Shown here: piece by piece, positions 14,946 to 55,454 of the stretch
Position numbering within the stretch: position 1 is the stretch's first letter
How the letters are laid out: each line of letters begins with the position of its first letter
Sequence record: NC_028999.1
DNA: 64,000 nt
Reading direction: 5' to 3' (one strand)
The notes under the pieces: model-generated
What the model was told of the DNA's origin: nothing
What the model saw: the letters and a program-made list of their open reading frames with translations, nothing else
Database searches by the model: none
Position numbers and translations under genes: made by a program

Positions 14946-16196
14946 TTAGGTTCGAGTGTAATAGTTCTTACACATCGCCCTCAAGATAACATAGAGCATC
15001 AAACCTGTTCGAGTAGCCGCAATGTGGCCTGCATATCGGTTACCGGTTGCATCACGTACCATCTTCTCCCCTGTGTCACGAATGAACAGGACTTGCTCGT
15101 TCGTGGTCTTAGAGGCCATGATCTTAGCTCGGATCTTCGTCAGCAGACCAATGAGATCGTTGTTACGTTGAACCGAGGTACGGATCGACTGCATGTAGTC
15201 AAAAGCGTAAAGCAGGGATTCATCGATGAATTTCTCAATGAACTCCATCCGCTTCAATCCCACGTTACGAGAAATATACTGAAGCGTGGGGACGAGCATG
15301 TGCTCTGGCATGGTGGGCATTGCTTTGTAGATCACTGACAGCAATTCTGGACGAATGAACGATTGCTCTGATGTCACCACCCCATGCATGTACCGCAGGT
15401 AGCTGGCGTAACCTGATGACTTGTCTTTAAGGACTTGTTCGCCATCGGTGTTCACTTGGACATCGGATGTAATGATCACCTTGGCTCCAGACTGAAGTGT
15501 CTGGATGTAAACACTGTAATACTTGTTGACGAGTTCACGAATACGGGACTGCGTGTCTGTTACGATTCGCTTAGCCCAATACGTGTCATCACGTTCACGG
15601 TCCAACAGATAGTTCTGATAGATATTCTCGTGGGTATTTGCAACAATCCCTTCAGCACGTTGACGGATGAGTTTACCCCAACTACCAATCGCTTTGATAT
15701 CGAACTTGTAGTTCAATGCAGCGAAGGTAGCTTCAGCAACTTCCCGACGAGCCGGATATTTGAAACGTCGAACCAATAGTGAGGTCAAGTACTTAAAGTG
15801 CAGGACCATAAAAGCACTGACCATTGCCTCGTGACGAATGTTCAGGGGAATGTTGGTTTCTTTGTTCAAGCGCATTGTGATATACCCTGGAAGGTAGTTG
15901 AATGCGTCTGAAGCAACAATGTGTGATGTATCGATTCCCTCTGCACGGTCGAAGTCGTGTTTGAGTAGATCGTCATCTACTCCGAGCACGTCATCAAACC
16001 AAAGCTCCCGATCTGTGTCGTAGAACTTAATCTCGTTCACACCCATCAACACTCCACCAAAGAACGCGGAGTGATCTTCGTTTCGGTTCATGAACCGAAC
16101 ACAATAATCGGTGATTCGTTTGCAGAGGTCACGATCAAACTTGACACCCTCGAAATGCTTGTCGAGTGTCTCGCGGACGGTGAGAGCCATGACCAA
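14946..16196 (-). CDS. Conserved virion (head) protein, phiKZ gp32-like
   Basis: 416-aa single minus-strand gene; MNRNEDHSAFFGGVLMGV, GSWGKLIRQRAE. Confidence 0.65.
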   Translation of the reverse strand: MVMALTVRETLDKHFEGVKFDRDLCKRITDYCVRFMNRNEDHSAFFGGVLMGVNEIKFYDTDRELWFDDVLGVDDDLLKHDFDRAEGIDTSHIVASDAFNYLPGYITMRLNKETNIPLNIRHEAMVSAFMVLHFKYLTSLLVRRFKYPARREVAEATFAALNYKFDIKAIGSWGKLIRQRAEGIVANTHENIYQNYLLDRERDDTYWAKRIVTDTQSRIRELVNKYYSVYIQTLQSGAKVIITSDVQVNTDGEQVLKDKSSGYASYLRYMHGVVTSEQSFIRPELLSVIYKAMPTMPEHMLVPTLQYISRNVGLKRMEFIEKFIDESLLYAFDYMQSIRTSVQRNNDLIGLLTKIRAKIMASKTTNEQVLFIRDTGEKMVRDATGNRYAGHIAATRTGLMLYVILRAMCKNYYTRT

Positions 16197-39274: not shown

Positions 39275-39279
39275 GAAAA

Positions 39280-39470
39280 GATACTGGGGTTTATCATTTA
39301 ATACAGGAGTTGGCCGTAAGGTACGATCCTGCACTAAAAGCTATGCCCCAGTGTCCACTGTTTGCAAATCGTTTTCAACTTAAGGAAGCGATTATGTAAT
39401 ACAGTATGTGGAAGTTCTGCTACCACAATGACCTAGCTTTTATAGCGGGTTTCGTGGTTTATAGCCCATT
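39280..39470. ncRNA. Candidate structured RNA upstream of the chimallin promoter
   Basis: GATACTGGGG(39280-89)/CCCCAGTGTC(39346-55) encloses CAGGA/TCCTG and CC-GTAA-GG; AATCGTTTTC(39367-76)/GGAAGCGATT(39384-93). Confidence 0.45.
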
Positions 39471-39487
39471 GAAAAAAATCTCACATC

Positions 39488-39495
39488 TATATCAC
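39488..39495 (+). promoter_or_regulatory. Early-type promoter TATATCAC of chimallin
   Basis: GAAAAAAATCTCACATCTATATCAC about 75 nt upstream of the ATG. Confidence 0.65.
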
Positions 39496-39570
39496 AGGTG
39501 TGCACTCGTTCCCGAAAGGTTCTGAGTCTACTTGATCAAGTATTGAAATACCATCGTAAAGGAAAAAGAC

Positions 39571-41454
39571 ATGTCTATTCGTGATAGCGAAAACAACAAC
39601 GGCCAACAGCAGCAGACCGCGCAAACTGCCGCCCCCGCCCCGCAAATGCAACAGACCCAACAAGGACCCAAAGTGCAAACTCAAACTCTCCAAGGCGGTG
39701 CTGGTAACCTGAACAGCATCTTCCAGCGTTCCGGCCGTACCGACGGTGGTGACGCTCGTGCCAGCGAAGCGCTGGCTGTGTTCAACAAACTGAAAGAAGA
39801 GGCAATCGCTCAGCAAGATCTGCATGACGATTTCCTGGTCTTCCGTTTCGACCGCGATCAGAACCGCGTAGGTTACTCCGCTCTGCTGGTTGTTAAGCGT
39901 GCCGCTATCAACGGTCAACAAGTCATCGTTACCCGCCCGCTGGTAATGCCGAACGATCAGATCACTCTGCCGACCAAGAAACTGACCATCCAAAACGGGA
40001 TGCATCAGGAAACCATCGAAGCGGAAGCTGACGTACAAGACGTGTTCACCACCCAGTACTGGAACCGCATCTGCGACTCCATTCGTCAGCAAACTGGCAA
40101 GCACGACGCCATGGTCATCAACGCTGGTCCGACCGTCATCCCCGCAGATTTCGATCTGAAAGATGAACTGGTTCTGAAGCAGCTGCTGATCAAATCCGTC
40201 AACCTGTGCGATGACATGCTGGCCAAGCGTTCCGGCGAACAGCCCTTCTCCGTTGCCATGCTCAAAGGCACCGACGAGACCCTGGCTGCCCGTCTGAACT
40301 TCACTGGTAAGCCGATGCATGACAGTCTGGGCTATCCGATCCGTTCGGACATCCTGGTATCCCTGAACCGCGTCAAGAAGCCGGGCCAGCAGGAGAACGA
40401 ATTCTACGAAGCCGAAGATAAGCTGAACCAAGTCAGCTGCTTCGTCAACCTGGAATACACTCCTCAGCCGCAACAAGCCATCTACGGTGCTCCGCAGCAA
40501 ACCCAACAGCTGCCTCCGCTCACTCCGGCCATCGTCATCACCGACGTACGTCAGGCTGAGTGGCTGAAAGCAAACACCATGGAACTGTACCTGTTCGCTC
40601 TGAGCAACGCATTCCGTGTAACTGCTAACCAGTCCTGGGCACGTAGCCTGCTGCCGCAACTGGGTAAGGTCAAGGACATGCGCGATATCGGTGCAATCGG
40701 CTACCTGAGCCGTCTTGCAGCGCGCGTTGAAACCAAGACCGAAACCTTCACCGACCAGAACTTCGCCGAACTTCTGTACAACATGGTTCGTCCGTCTCCG
40801 GTGTTCATGTCCGACCTGAACCGCTTCGGCGACAACGCTGCGATCGAGAACGTCTTCATCGACGCCCTCGGTGGTGTAAACCAGCAGCGCGCTGTAGCGG
40901 CTATCATTGCCGGTGTGAACAACCTGATTGGTGGTGGCTTCGAGAAGTTCTTCGATCACAACACCATGCCGATCATCCAGCCGTACGGCACCGACATCCA
41001 GCTGGGCTACTACCTGGATGGCGAGGGTGAGAAGCAAGACCGTCGTGACCTGGACGTCCTGGGCGCTCTGAACGCCAGCGACGGCAACATCCAGGAATGG
41101 ATGAGCTGGTACGGCACTCAGTGCAACGTCGCAGTACATCCGGAACTGCGTGCTCGCCAGTCGAAGAACTTCGACCGTCAGTACCTGGGTAACTCCGTCA
41201 CCTACACCACCCGTGCACATCGTGGTATCTGGAACCCGAAATTCATCGAGGCTCTGGACAAAGCGATCGCGTCGGTTGGCCTGACCGTAGCCATGGACAA
41301 CGTGGCTCAGGTGTTCGGTGCTCAGCGCTTCAGCGGCAACCTGGCTATCGCCGACTACGCCGTTACTGGTACCGCTCAGGTATCCAGCGGCCTGGTTTCC
41401 AACGGTGGCTACAACCCGCAGTTCGGTGTAGGTCAAGGCTCGGGCTTCTATTAA
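39571..41454 (+). CDS. chmA: Chimallin, major phage nuclear shell protein
   Basis: 627 aa matching the recalled phiPA3 gp53 sequence (QGPKVQTQTLQGGAGNLNSIF...QRFSGN...); canonical position upstream of the nvRNAP beta-prime gene. Confidence 0.93.
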   Translation: MSIRDSENNNGQQQQTAQTAAPAPQMQQTQQGPKVQTQTLQGGAGNLNSIFQRSGRTDGGDARASEALAVFNKLKEEAIAQQDLHDDFLVFRFDRDQNRVGYSALLVVKRAAINGQQVIVTRPLVMPNDQITLPTKKLTIQNGMHQETIEAEADVQDVFTTQYWNRICDSIRQQTGKHDAMVINAGPTVIPADFDLKDELVLKQLLIKSVNLCDDMLAKRSGEQPFSVAMLKGTDETLAARLNFTGKPMHDSLGYPIRSDILVSLNRVKKPGQQENEFYEAEDKLNQVSCFVNLEYTPQPQQAIYGAPQQTQQLPPLTPAIVITDVRQAEWLKANTMELYLFALSNAFRVTANQSWARSLLPQLGKVKDMRDIGAIGYLSRLAARVETKTETFTDQNFAELLYNMVRPSPVFMSDLNRFGDNAAIENVFIDALGGVNQQRAVAAIIAGVNNLIGGGFEKFFDHNTMPIIQPYGTDIQLGYYLDGEGEKQDRRDLDVLGALNASDGNIQEWMSWYGTQCNVAVHPELRARQSKNFDRQYLGNSVTYTTRAHRGIWNPKFIEALDKAIASVGLTVAMDNVAQVFGAQRFSGNLAIADYAVTGTAQVSSGLVSNGGYNPQFGVGQGSGFY

Positions 41455-41945
41455 TAGAAGCCTAACCAAATAACTCCCTCGGTAGATAGGGGTGTACGAA
41501 GGCGTACATCCCGATTCTAATGCGTATACTTAGGCCAACTCGAAAGAGATCGCCTAGAGATAGGTAGGTTCCGTGGTAGCCCCAGCTTTATCGGAAACTG
41601 ATTTATTGCAGACCTTGGTCATTGCCAGAGCGCTTATCTACGTTGTGGGGTAGGTTGATAAGACGACAATGACTCGGAGTGAGGCCCACTCTCCTTAACA
41701 GTGCAATTGGATCAAGTCTGGTCAGGCAGCGCTATCACTACACGAGTTGTGAGTTAGAACCACTTAACCCAAAAGGCGTCACTCTAGGGAGACGTTGTGG
41801 TTCACATGGGGCATGGAATCACCTAGCAGGCTTGATGGTAAAACATTAAGGTAACCAGCCGTGGAGGATACCCAACCCAAAATAGGGGTAACCCCCTGGG
41901 ATAAAGGCGGCTCCTTCGGGAGCCGCTTATATCTCCTTTTTTTGT
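41455..41945 (+). ncRNA. Candidate large structured ncRNA (about 450 nt) downstream of chimallin
   Basis: No credible ORF; about ten nested stems including long-range pairings; ends at a UUCG terminator (41904-41943). Confidence 0.7.
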
Positions 41946-41969
41946 CGTCGTAGTGGAGGGAATAACGAC

Positions 41970-43436
41970 ATGGGTCTGTATGCGGCAATCGTCAATCACG
42001 ACGAGATGCTTGCCAATGCAACTGGCAAGATCGTATTCGCAAATGACTTCAATACCAGTAACGCAGAACAGAAGGAGGAATTCACGCGACATCTGTATTC
42101 GCATTATCAGGATGCAGACGCCATTGAGAACTCGGCCTCGTGTGAATGTGAACACATCACAGATGCACACAAGCTCGGCGTAATCTGTGAAGTTTGTGGT
42201 ACACCTGTTGTTAGTACATCTAATCGTCCCATTGTTCCATCGATGTGGGTACGTGCACCGGAAGGGGTGGTGAGTCTGGTTAGTCCGGAACTCTGGATCA
42301 TGCTCAGTGGGTATATGACCATGAAGGAGTTCGACTTCCTGGAATATCTCACAAACACGGGCTATAGTTACGACTACGACACCATCAGCTCCAAAGAAAC
42401 CAAAAAGAAACTTGACAAGCTGTTACAACGTGGGTTTACTCGCGGCTTGAACCATTTCATCGAGAACTTTGATGAGATTTTTCAGTTCTTGCTTGATGCA
42501 AACATTATTAACAATAACAAAGGCGAGATGTATGCCTTTGTACAACAGAACAAACATAAGCTGTTCCCGAAGAATCTTCCAATCCCCTCCAAACTGTGTT
42601 TTGTGGTAGAATCAACCACATCGGGTACGTACATCGATAAACCAATTGCTGCTGCAATTGATGCGGTGTTGACCATCAGTTCGATTGGTTCATCTCCGAT
42701 TGAACTTAAGTCGATCGTTGTCCAAAATCGGGTAGCGCGATTCCTCAAATTGAATGCTACCTTCCACGAGAACTATGACAAACAACGGATAGCTCAGAAA
42801 CAGGGCCTGATTCGTCGACACGTCTTGGGTGGCCGTCTTAACCTGACCGCTCGGGCAGTAATCACCTCGATCAGTTCTCCGCATGATTACGATGAACTGC
42901 ATATCCCGTGGGGTGTTGGCTGTCAGCTATTGAAGTATCACCTGGTCAACAAGCTGAAACGTAAGTTCCGTATGACCACCCGAGATGCGATGTCCTACAT
43001 CTATTCGAAGGTACTAGCGTACGATCCGATGCTCGATAGCCTCTTCAAGGAAATCATTGCAGAATCCAAGTACAAAGGCCTGGCTGCGGTATTCCACCGT
43101 AACCCGACTCTACAACGTGGTTCGACTCAGCAGTTCTTCATCACCAAAGTGAAGAGCGACATCAGGGATAATTCCATCAGCATGTCTGTGCTATGTCTGA
43201 AGGCACCTAACGCGGATTTTGACGGCGATCAACTGAACTTGACGCTGATGCCTGATAACTATCTGGCTGATGCAACTGACCGAATCGCTCCTTGGAGCTG
43301 GGTACTGAGTACGGATGATCCCCATGAAATTTCGGGGAACTTGGAATTACAAGGCCCGGTTGTCGAGACGATCATTAACTTTGCTCACGAGGACTATCTC
43401 CCGCCGCTCGAAGAGTGGTTGAAGATGGCTGCCTAA
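41970..43436 (+). CDS. Non-virion RNA polymerase beta-prime N-terminal subunit (phiKZ gp55-like), uninterrupted
   Basis: Zn site CEC...CEVC, RRHVLGGR, RNPTLQRGS, catalytic KAPNADFDGDQLN. Confidence 0.93.
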   Translation: MGLYAAIVNHDEMLANATGKIVFANDFNTSNAEQKEEFTRHLYSHYQDADAIENSASCECEHITDAHKLGVICEVCGTPVVSTSNRPIVPSMWVRAPEGVVSLVSPELWIMLSGYMTMKEFDFLEYLTNTGYSYDYDTISSKETKKKLDKLLQRGFTRGLNHFIENFDEIFQFLLDANIINNNKGEMYAFVQQNKHKLFPKNLPIPSKLCFVVESTTSGTYIDKPIAAAIDAVLTISSIGSSPIELKSIVVQNRVARFLKLNATFHENYDKQRIAQKQGLIRRHVLGGRLNLTARAVITSISSPHDYDELHIPWGVGCQLLKYHLVNKLKRKFRMTTRDAMSYIYSKVLAYDPMLDSLFKEIIAESKYKGLAAVFHRNPTLQRGSTQQFFITKVKSDIRDNSISMSVLCLKAPNADFDGDQLNLTLMPDNYLADATDRIAPWSWVLSTDDPHEISGNLELQGPVVETIINFAHEDYLPPLEEWLKMAA

Positions 43437-44068: not shown

Positions 44069-44076
44069 CGCCATAA

Positions 44077-44207
44077 GAGAGAGCCCTTCGGGGCTCTCTC
44101 GCTTTATTTTATTTTGTTTGGAGTAGTCATGGACCTTTACCATTCCTGCTTAATCATGTGAGCCCTGCGGAGTCTTCGGACTCCGCTTCAATTCCCTAAT
44201 TTTTTTT
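44077..44207 (+). terminator. Two tandem UUCG hairpins
   Basis: GAGAGAGCCC-TTCG-GGGCTCTCTC (44077-44100) and GCGGAGTC-TTCG-GACTCCGC (44167-44186), each followed by T-rich tracts. Confidence 0.75.
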
Positions 44208-44217
44208 GGGTGTTCAC

Positions 44218-44619
44218 ATGCCTGCTATCCCAACTTTAGACAGCCAAGGCTGGCTTTCGGACGTAGCCTCGAAGGCAGACTACGTTTTGTCATGCTTCCT
44301 AGCCACTAACCGTTCGCAATCCACACTGCACCGTGAACAAAATACCTCGATGCAATATCTGTTGAAGAAGAATGCCAATCGCACCCAATCCCTAGAGACA
44401 GATCTTCAGAATGCCTTACTGGAGAAACTGCAAACCACATTCGATGAAACGGCACAAGCTATCGTCACTGTGGAAGTATCTGATCCAAATGTACCGGACC
44501 AATACTCCATTCGGTTTACTGGGATTGTTTACGATGGCACTAAACAGTATACAGTCGGAAAACTGGTTCAGTTCCAGAATTCTCGTATCATCAACATCGC
44601 AGCTATCAACAACGGTTAA
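44218..44619 (+). CDS. Conserved hypothetical protein
   Basis: MPAIPTLDSQGW...; 133 aa. Confidence 0.7.
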   Translation: MPAIPTLDSQGWLSDVASKADYVLSCFLATNRSQSTLHREQNTSMQYLLKKNANRTQSLETDLQNALLEKLQTTFDETAQAIVTVEVSDPNVPDQYSIRFTGIVYDGTKQYTVGKLVQFQNSRIINIAAINNG

Positions 44620-55004: not shown

Positions 55005-55454
55005 TCGCTATGAATGTCAATAAACATTGATTAAAGTATACTTATTTGTCCGTGGTATGTTGAACAAGTTGCCGTAGGATAAATAAGTGAAGATTTTAAT
55101 GGATGGATATTCAAAGAAATGTAAGAGCCTGCTTAATCAGCGATGGTTAAGTAATCGTCATCTAATTGCGGGAAACCCCTGAGAGCCTTATCTACTAACT
55201 CAACCCAGCGATGGAGTTGAGGGCCAGTCTAATCCACTGGGTACAGTAAAAATGATAAGGATTGGGCAATCCGCAGCGAAGCTTCTCTTTGAGAAGAACG
55301 TTCAACGACTAACCCCTAACCAGGGTGTAGAACTTAAGCGAGTTCGAAATGGTGACCCTCTCACGCAGAGGAAGATATAGTCTGTTCCCATGTGAAAGCA
55401 TGGGCGGGTGTCATAGCACACCGGGATAGCGTAGCGAACTATCTGGACAAAAAG
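55005..55454 (+). mobile_element. Group I intron (IA2-like) without a homing endonuclease ORF
   Basis: P AATTGCGGGAAA 55164-75; Q AATCCGCAGC 55268-77; R GTTCAACGACTAA 55300-12; S AAGATATAGTC 55372-82; P3 GTCATC/GGTGAC; P7.1/P7.2 hairpins; P9 with GAAA loop; terminal G55454. Confidence 0.92.

Follow-up and report, generated by a model that had tools for sequence, protein, structure and literature searches.

What occupies the 515 nt that separate the gene for chimallin (chmA, gp053) from the gene for the β' subunit of the non-virion RNA polymerase (nvRNAP; gp054) in Pseudomonas phage PhiPA3? Nucleus-forming phages make chimallin before, and in larger amounts than, any other product, and no intergenic gap in the first 50 kb of the genome is longer than this one (41455-41969). 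The window analysed was the first 64 kb of PhiPA3 (HQ630627 / NC_028999, with the same sequence and coordinates), and an original prediction made from those letters had placed in the gap one large, closed, multi-branched non-coding RNA. Comparison with related phages led to another picture. The gap is very probably a transcribed 3' untranslated region (UTR) with a structure that is in part under selection, and the element within it is a mosaic, composed of a type I 5' domain (P1, P2-hp1, hp2 and P5), a three-way junction and a lineage-specific 3' part. The overall reading that we favour, tentatively and at a little under an even chance, is a modular structured chmA 3' UTR, or an RNA derived from it, that would act as a protein-binding platform.

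Conserved helices and compensatory changes

A related element is present in the corresponding gap of phiKZ, which is 394 nt long, and of PA1C-like phages, where the gap measures 427 nt. Common to PhiPA3, phiKZ and PA1C are module A, a hairpin at the hp2 position, the sequences GUAGGUUCCG and GCUAUCACUACACGAG, a three-way junction with the sequence CUUAAC, and the terminator. Covariance models were built for module A (R1), for the three-way junction (R2) and for a further module, module B (R3). The parts of the PhiPA3 element were located as follows.

41472-41524, + strand: module A, R1 model match of 79.8 bits, with compensatory changes in P2 and hp1
41478-41481, + strand: P1 5' strand CUCG, pairing with CGAG at 41743-41746 and closing the conserved 5' domain
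41483-41486 with 41516-41519, + strand: P2 of module A, capped by hairpin hp1
41489-41512, + strand: hp1, GGGGUGUACG-AAGG-CGUACAUCCC, pair probability 0.99
41531-41556, + strand: hp2, UAGGC..CUC-GAAA-GAG..GCCUA, pair probability 0.95-0.99
41561-41572, + strand: conserved stretch UAGGUAGGUUCC, of which GUAGGUUCCG is invariant in the three phages
41573-41580, + strand: P5 5' strand GUGGUAGC, pairing with GCUAUCAC at 41731-41738, pair probability 0.52
41581-41730, + strand: PhiPA3-only 150-nt expansion inside P5, where PA1C and phiKZ have a 35-nt hairpin instead
41731-41746, + strand: conserved 3' strands of P5 and P1, GCUAUCACUACACGAG
41754-41806, + strand: three-way junction, R2 model match of 66.9 bits
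41807-41905, + strand: PhiPA3-only 3' part, from the alignment; the R3 model finds no module B
41900-41943, + strand: intrinsic-terminator-like hairpin, pair probability 1.00

A comparative model of PhiPA3, PA1C and phiKZ, comprising P1, P2, hp1, hp2, P5 and the junction (41757-41803), had 92.6% of its cells paired, and in eight pairs both partners had changed. No shuffle out of 500 reached the observed value, and slid controls gave 36-49%. P1 was 100% paired in the three phages and carries one compensatory pair (CUCG/CGAG versus CCCG/CGGG), its pair probability in PhiPA3 being 0.40. P5 also has one, U-A in PhiPA3 and phiKZ versus C-G in PA1C. The three-way junction, which is built from a closing helix (41757-63 with 41797-803; pair probability 0.87), a mini-hairpin (41769-76) and a hairpin (41778-93) and contains CUUAAC, shows three compensatory pairs relative to PA1C and phiKZ. 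The flanks of module A, CGGU.GAUAGGG and CAUCCCGAUUC.AAU, are conserved, and hp2 is conserved in position, not in sequence; PA1C and phiKZ carry another hairpin there.

The single-sequence minimum free energy (MFE) fold of phiKZ was set against the substitutions found in PA1C. Fourteen pairs were kept, seven of them via double changes, and five were broken, while random placement of the same substitutions would break 26 (P<0.0005). PA1C and phiKZ are 80-98% identical between +14 and +370 after the stop codon, compared with 40-65% in both flanking genes, and the whole element was kept in 48 of 48 phiKZ-like GenBank records at an identity of at least 95.8%. Compensatory changes beyond the level of the controls identify the conserved core as a structured RNA. 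The earlier proposal of a structured RNA therefore holds, by covariation and by the substitution test, for parts of the gap, and these are under selection.

G-U pairs are present in the conserved helices and, together with a better folding score for the + strand, favour an RNA made from that strand. The motifs CAUCCCGAUUC, GUAGGUUCCG and CACUUAAC are invariant and unpaired, which suggests a specific partner.

Folding strength and an alternative fold in PhiPA3

All the helices listed in the original prediction were fully complementary at the coordinates given. The excess of folding over shuffled sequence is modest, and weaker than its description of the gap as folding extensively would suggest. 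The MFE z-score was -3.1 for 41455-41969 with the terminator included and -1.8 without it, when 4 of 100 shuffles folded equally well; the - strand of the same gap gave -2.5. Module A with hp2 (41472-41560) gave z = -2.8 and the three-way junction z = -1.9, whereas the interior (41581-41730, z = -0.2) and the 3' stretch (41804-41905, z = -0.5) folded no better than shuffles. Folding above shuffle level is confined to the pieces that prove conserved.

The proposed interior stems ATTGCA/TGCAAT, GTCATTG/CAATGAC and GAGTG/CACTC fall in the stretch that folds at chance level, and the TACCC/GGGTA hairpin had a pair probability of 0.03. The pairing of CCAGA with TCTGG scored 0.00 in a calculation unable to form pseudoknots. 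The PhiPA3-only 3' part holds the 3' strands of the proposed long-range stems (41807-25), the hairpin GGGGUAACCCC (41885-95) and the hairpin CUUGAUG/CAUUAAG (41831-50; pair probability 0.94).

Pair probabilities were 0.34-0.46 for the complementary strands of the long-range stems (41561-84/41807-25) and of the closing stem (41474-82/41859-66), and these stems found no support in the homologues. They are not formed in PA1C or phiKZ, and their covariation score was equalled by 52 of 500 shuffles. The alternative pairing of 41561-41572 with 41807-41825 (0.34-0.46 in PhiPA3) likewise lacks comparative support. One substitution is informative: at the site equivalent to 41574, PA1C has C for U, a change matched by a compensating one in P5 but not in the long-range stem. 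The competing helices of PhiPA3 have similar pair probabilities, 0.34-0.46 for the long-range stems versus 0.40-0.52 for the conserved P1 and P5, and the two folds, which are mutually exclusive, are iso-energetic (-168.3 versus -168.8 kcal/mol). When 41455-41900 was used as input, both the MFE and the centroid structure used the long-range and closing stems. Because the two folds are iso-energetic and these stems lack homologue support, the fold first proposed appears from the calculations to be possible in PhiPA3, but it is not conserved. The closing and long-range stems are PhiPA3-only alternatives, and the idea of a single closed, conserved large RNA falls with them.

Location of the gap and search for known genes and RNA families

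The gap is bounded by the following genes.

39571-41454, + strand: chmA, chimallin, gp053 (Pfam PF25677, E 2e-286; annotation)
41970-43436, + strand: gp054, nvRNAP β' subunit gene (Pfam RNA_pol_Rpb1_2; annotation)

The start of chmA is at 39646 in RefSeq and its stop codon is at 41452-41454; a Shine-Dalgarno-like GGAGGG (41955-60) lies ahead of gp054. The gap had been called non-coding, correctly so. Open reading frames (ORFs) of 30-115 aa that overlap 41455-41969 had no PHROG match and are not conserved, and indels in PA1C and phiKZ disrupt every frame across the gap, so that no protein-coding gene is indicated. The element is on the strand of chmA, upstream of the chmA terminator. Two other long gaps were seen nearby, at 39275-39645 (371 nt, upstream of chmA) and at 44069-44349 (281 nt, gp055/gp056).

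A search of the 64-kb window with Rfam 15 (4227 models) at gathering score matched RF00028 at 55111-55404 only. Between 41350 and 42050 at E<=10 there were just sub-threshold terminator-like matches of 12-19 bits, and six homologous loci gave none in their UTRs at E<=5; these permissive searches, including those with RF00028, took in PhiPA3, PA1C, phiKZ, Psa21, 201phi2-1 and the loci L138 and L150. The Rfam comparison called for by the prediction thus matched no known family in PhiPA3 or in the six homologous loci. The hallmarks of tmRNA and group I introns had been judged absent, and in agreement with this ARAGORN found 0 tRNA or tmRNA genes in 41300-42100 and RF00028 gave no match at E<=10. 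The same model scored 79 bits, as a full-length match, on the true intron at 55111-55404 (+) in the same window, and this match represents the self-splicing intron described for the nvRNAP gene gp65-66 (PMC11077065). A group I intron was rejected as a candidate: RF00028 had no match at E<=10 in the homologous loci either, the element lies between the chmA stop and the terminator, and relatives without it keep chmA and the β' gene intact. No ribozyme family was matched in the Rfam searches and nothing indicates a ribozyme. This RNA is not described in the transcriptome papers on phiKZ and 201phi2-1 or in two recent reviews.

A possible protein-binding platform

Evidence for RNA from the gap, and for its contact with a phage protein, comes from the literature. 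Enhanced cross-linking and immunoprecipitation (eCLIP) of ChmC in PhiPA3-infected PAO1 gave high read coverage in peaks between chmA and gp54, the gp203/gp204 gap being the other peak named (Enustun et al. 2024, PMC11077065; data in GEO GSE243675). The earlier suggestion of a ChmC ligand therefore has independent published support.

On the reading that we favour, transcription would start at the chmA promoters and most transcripts would end at 41900-41943; we infer this co-transcription, as we do the platform role and any effect on stability. The conserved junctions and loops would most likely form a platform for phage or host RNA-binding proteins, ChmC being the candidate partner with experimental support. 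The UTR might remain attached to the chmA message, or a stable fragment derived from it might survive, and the region may influence the handling and stability of the very abundant chmA mRNA. It may also affect the amount of transcription that reads on into the β' gene, since 26 nt separate the U run of the terminator from the start of that gene. The combination of a platform with a role in stability is, taken by itself, somewhat doubtful.

Several points weigh against a platform. ChmC binds phage mRNAs broadly and without a motif, and the peaks in the gap are described in words (PMC11077065). Protection of a 3' end alone needs neither 450 nt nor invariant loops. Roughly half of the element in PhiPA3 is specific to its lineage and folds no better than chance, and many relatives have the same terminator and gene order without the element, so that any role would be accessory. 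Recombination (PA7 and phiHQ, below) also accounts for part of the identity between PA1C and phiKZ, which is therefore not purely a product of purifying selection.

Parts of the element are more conserved than the flanking essential genes; lineages exchange it, and it appears in the ChmC cross-linking data. The phage-nucleus RNA pathway would gain its first defined RNA ligands if the modules bind ChmC or host factors, and the setting of the ratio of ChmA to nvRNAP would be explained if they tune read-through. Both phiKZ and PhiPA3 are model phages that have already been engineered. The comparative data also correct the fold that had been proposed and flag a likely spurious ORF annotation in Psa21.

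Mosaic distribution and exchange of modules

The distance from the chmA stop to the terminator was 28-484 nt among 30 chimallin loci of the Pseudomonas clade (these include L001, L002, L005-L012 and L134-L164), and all of the length variation lies upstream of the conserved terminator. Noxifer, D6 and RVTF4 have the terminator only, 28-44 nt after the stop. As the element is absent from many chimallin phages, these among them, it cannot be a core part of the nucleus, such as the shell scaffold or general export signal that had been suggested.

Module B, which is replaced in PhiPA3 by 41807-41905, consists of two hairpins with the invariant loops GAGCGGAGGUUAAG and GGCUCCGUUGG and has seven compensatory pairs in its stems, in which changes between distant phages are fully compensated. 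The two loops have 5-bp complementarity and could kiss via CGGAG/CUCCG, and loop 2 (GGCUCCG) was seen by eye to repeat the 5' arm of the terminator. Module B is present in phiKZ, PA1C, phiHQ and three metagenomic phages, the chimallin of the last three sharing only ~46% identity with the PhiPA3 protein; PhiPA3 itself lacks the module. A second, Psa21-type 5' domain occurs at the same site.

Module B: L002 1411-1486; L001 1743-1818; L138 4370-4445; L151 4397-4471; L158 4505-4580
Psa21-type domain: L164 726-1267 (phiHQ); L009 4274-4711 (Psa21)

phiHQ is a chimera, in which the 3' 230 nt are 98.7% identical to PA1C and the 5' domain is of the Psa21 type. Comparison of that domain between Psa21 and phiHQ gave 24 compensatory pairs out of 69; the antisense ORF gp057, annotated inside it in Psa21, is probably not a gene. 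The phiKZ-like phage PA7 (L014 ~70-400, - strand) has a PA1C-like patch confined to the outer helix of module B, with eight changes that preserve pairing and one that breaks it, which points to recombination inside the UTR. Identity over the element is 82% for PA1C and phiKZ and 52% for PA1C and PhiPA3, whereas the flanking genes show the reverse, with PhiPA3 closer to PA1C. This incongruence suggests that recombination within the UTR contributes to the pattern.

A search of the 64-kb window and of 28 chimallin loci with models R1-R3 gave no additional significant copy, and no copy of a module was seen elsewhere in the window or in a second, 45-kb stretch of PhiPA3. By-eye matches to the junction in 201phi2-1 and Psa21 and to module A in L150 were not significant (E = 4.2 for L150), and a weak junction match in Phabio (E = 0.3-0.8) is, like these, a lead only. 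One R3 match, at 16047-16102 (- strand, 22 bits), lies inside the gp017 frame, lacks loop 1 and is probably due to chance. The conserved patterns occurred in IMG/VR only in PhiPA3 and phiKZ-like contigs and in none of 185,579 bacterial and archaeal genomes; one pattern, of 14 bases, was too short to be specific and matched by chance only. The PhiPA3-only parts had no other match in 50,697 phage records, and a metagenome scan for chimallin added six loci and no new PhiPA3-type element. The gp203/gp204 gap (L168 25482-25610; PhiPA3 185481-185609), which holds a terminator-like hairpin and ~80 nt more, has no similarity to the chmA 3' UTR. Five candidates picked out by eye, an Rsm/CsrA GGA sponge, a CRISPR-repeat mimic, a hammerhead core, a sequence mimicking the 16S 3' tail and a short ORF following the GGAGG loop of module B, were rejected; none is conserved across the three phages.

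These distributions bear on a trans-acting alternative, by which modules would be cut from the chmA 3' UTR to work as a base-pairing small RNA or, as a decoy or sponge, to occupy a nuclease, a defence sensor or an RNA-binding protein of the host, with an arms race behind the exchange of cassettes. The exchange of modules is in keeping with it (the phiHQ chimera, the foreign patch in PA7 and the PA1C-phiKZ similarity that is incongruent with the flanking genes), and so are two unrelated large 5' domains at one site, both covarying, and invariant loops such as those of module B. 3'-UTR-derived phage ncRNAs are moreover known in phiKZ and PAK_P3 (PMC8545117, PMC10914365), and the authors of the eCLIP study proposed 'small regulatory RNAs' (PMC11077065). 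However, mosaics can arise by recombination alone, without an arms race. No processing site, target or partner is known, and the rest of the window, the second PhiPA3 stretch and the bacterial genomes held no module copy. We regard a trans-acting RNA as unlikely.

A bolder version, which we consider distinctly improbable, treats the space between the chimallin stop and the terminator as a cassette site at which nucleus-forming Pseudomonas phages swap structured RNA domains, these being functional ChmC ligands or decoys against host RNA-directed factors. The cassettes would be type I (phiKZ, PA1C and PhiPA3), type II (Psa21 and phiHQ), module B and others. If this were true, the chmA 3' UTR would be an RNA-level accessory or counter-defence locus, of a kind not yet described for phages.

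The terminator and read-through into the β' gene

The core of the putative terminator (41906-27) is a 9-bp G+C-rich stem with a UUCG loop; the stem extends over 41900-33 and is followed by UCC and U7 (41937-43). The U run is separated from the core stem by 9 nt and from the extended stem by 3 nt, and because of the latter a strict terminator scan misses 41900-41943. The hairpin is 97% identical to that of phiKZ and is conserved, by position as well as sequence, across all the relatives. Both earlier statements about termination, a UUCG terminator 3' of the element and none between chmA and the element, agree with these data, as no terminator-like site was present on the + strand from the chmA stop to 41900.

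The U run lies 21-33 nt before the β' ATG in 27 of the 30 relatives (26 nt in PhiPA3); in the three exceptions an extra ORF is inserted or the simple pattern found no terminator. A spacing of 21-33 nt leaves no room for a promoter, so that expression of β' seems to rely on transcription passing a terminator that looks strong. A scan that does not cover phage promoters found no sigma-70-like site on the + strand of the gap. Early and middle promoters have been reported for gene 54 of phiKZ, which has been placed in a six-gene operon (PMC8244752); this placement agrees with read-through into β'. The geometry fits a 3'-UTR-derived RNA that shares its 3' end and terminator with the chmA mRNA.

This arrangement invites the view that the element is a cis-regulator of read-through into nvRNAP β', possibly fold-switching, as an attenuator-like or put-type antitermination RNA. 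The close spacing of U run and ATG in most relatives would fit, as would the two exclusive, iso-energetic folds of PhiPA3 and the likeness of module B loop 2 to the terminator 5' arm. Yet the same terminator and spacing are found in relatives without the element, no antiterminator pairing with the terminator arms was found in PhiPA3, where the terminator has a pair probability of 1.00, and the alternative fold spares the terminator and is not conserved. No riboswitch family was matched and no ligand class is suggested, so that a riboswitch or attenuator is not indicated. A regulator of this kind has, in our estimation, a low probability.

The insertion site beside the terminator

Extra ORFs were noted between the chmA terminator and the β' gene in 201phi2-1 (gp106, L008 4487-5053) and in Phabio (gp083, L007 4549-4821), neither of which had a PHROG match, and further extra ORFs lie 3' of the terminator in L134 and L163. 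The site next to the chmA terminator seems to be an insertion hot-spot.

The element could on this basis be selfish or neutral filler, its modules being relics of mobile elements or hitch-hikers without benefit in a space, between the stop codon of an essential gene and its terminator, that tolerates insertions. The wide range of lengths (28-484 nt), the ORFs beside the site and the chance-level folding of the PhiPA3-only parts are all compatible with filler, and these phages often carry group I introns and homing endonucleases (PMC11077065). Neutral sequence, however, would not keep pairs through double substitutions, would not hold 80-98% identity next to flanking genes that fall to about 60% and would not stay intact in 48 of 48 phiKZ-like isolates; furthermore no intron model was matched and no repeats typical of transposons were seen. 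We think filler improbable. The single closed RNA of 430-450 nt first proposed, acting structurally or as a catalyst at the phage nucleus (shell scaffold, export signal or ribozyme), is very improbable, for although its stems all exist, the whole region reaches z = -3.1 and the MFE and centroid folds of 41455-41900 use its long-range and closing stems, those stems lack covariation, are not formed in PA1C or phiKZ and compete with the conserved P1 and P5, its interior folds at chance level, no ribozyme family matches it and many nucleus-forming phages lack it.

Comparison with known systems

The RNA is uncatalogued and new, but it is of a known general kind. GOLLD and ROOL are, like it, large, multi-branched, phage-borne RNAs without an assigned function; the chmA element has no covariance-model match, is smaller, is part of an mRNA and occurs in Pseudomonas phiKZ-like phages only. 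The group I introns of phiKZ-like phages (for example at 55111-55404) resemble it in size, multi-branched fold, patchy distribution and phage group, whereas the chmA element has no RF00028 match (E<10) and lies outside reading frames, between stop and terminator. HK022 put, lambda nut and the expression platforms of riboswitches also place a structured RNA directly before an intrinsic terminator that precedes a promoterless essential gene. They differ in that the chmA terminator and its spacing are the same in relatives without the RNA, and in that no competing antiterminator helix or conserved switch was found.

The 3' UTRs of RNA viruses (flavivirus xrRNA and dumbbell elements, and the 3' elements of plant viruses) share with the chmA element tandem, separately folding modules, a three-way junction, loop-loop complementarity (in the relatives), conserved loops, covarying stems, and modules that are gained, lost and swapped. 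The chmA element, in contrast, belongs to a DNA-phage mRNA in a bacterium without Xrn1 and matches no Rfam model.

The last group to be compared is that of the 3'-UTR-derived small RNAs, such as the PHIKZ298 3'-UTR RNA of phiKZ and ncRNA1/2 of PAK_P3. These are 50-210 nt long, whereas the chmA element is of ~450 nt, with several domains, and is mosaic between lineages; it is known from sequence and eCLIP reads, with no known processing site, seed or target. In both cases the RNA lies between a stop codon and the mRNA's own terminator with no separate promoter evident, its reads pile up in protein cross-linking, and it is conserved among the relatives of the phage.

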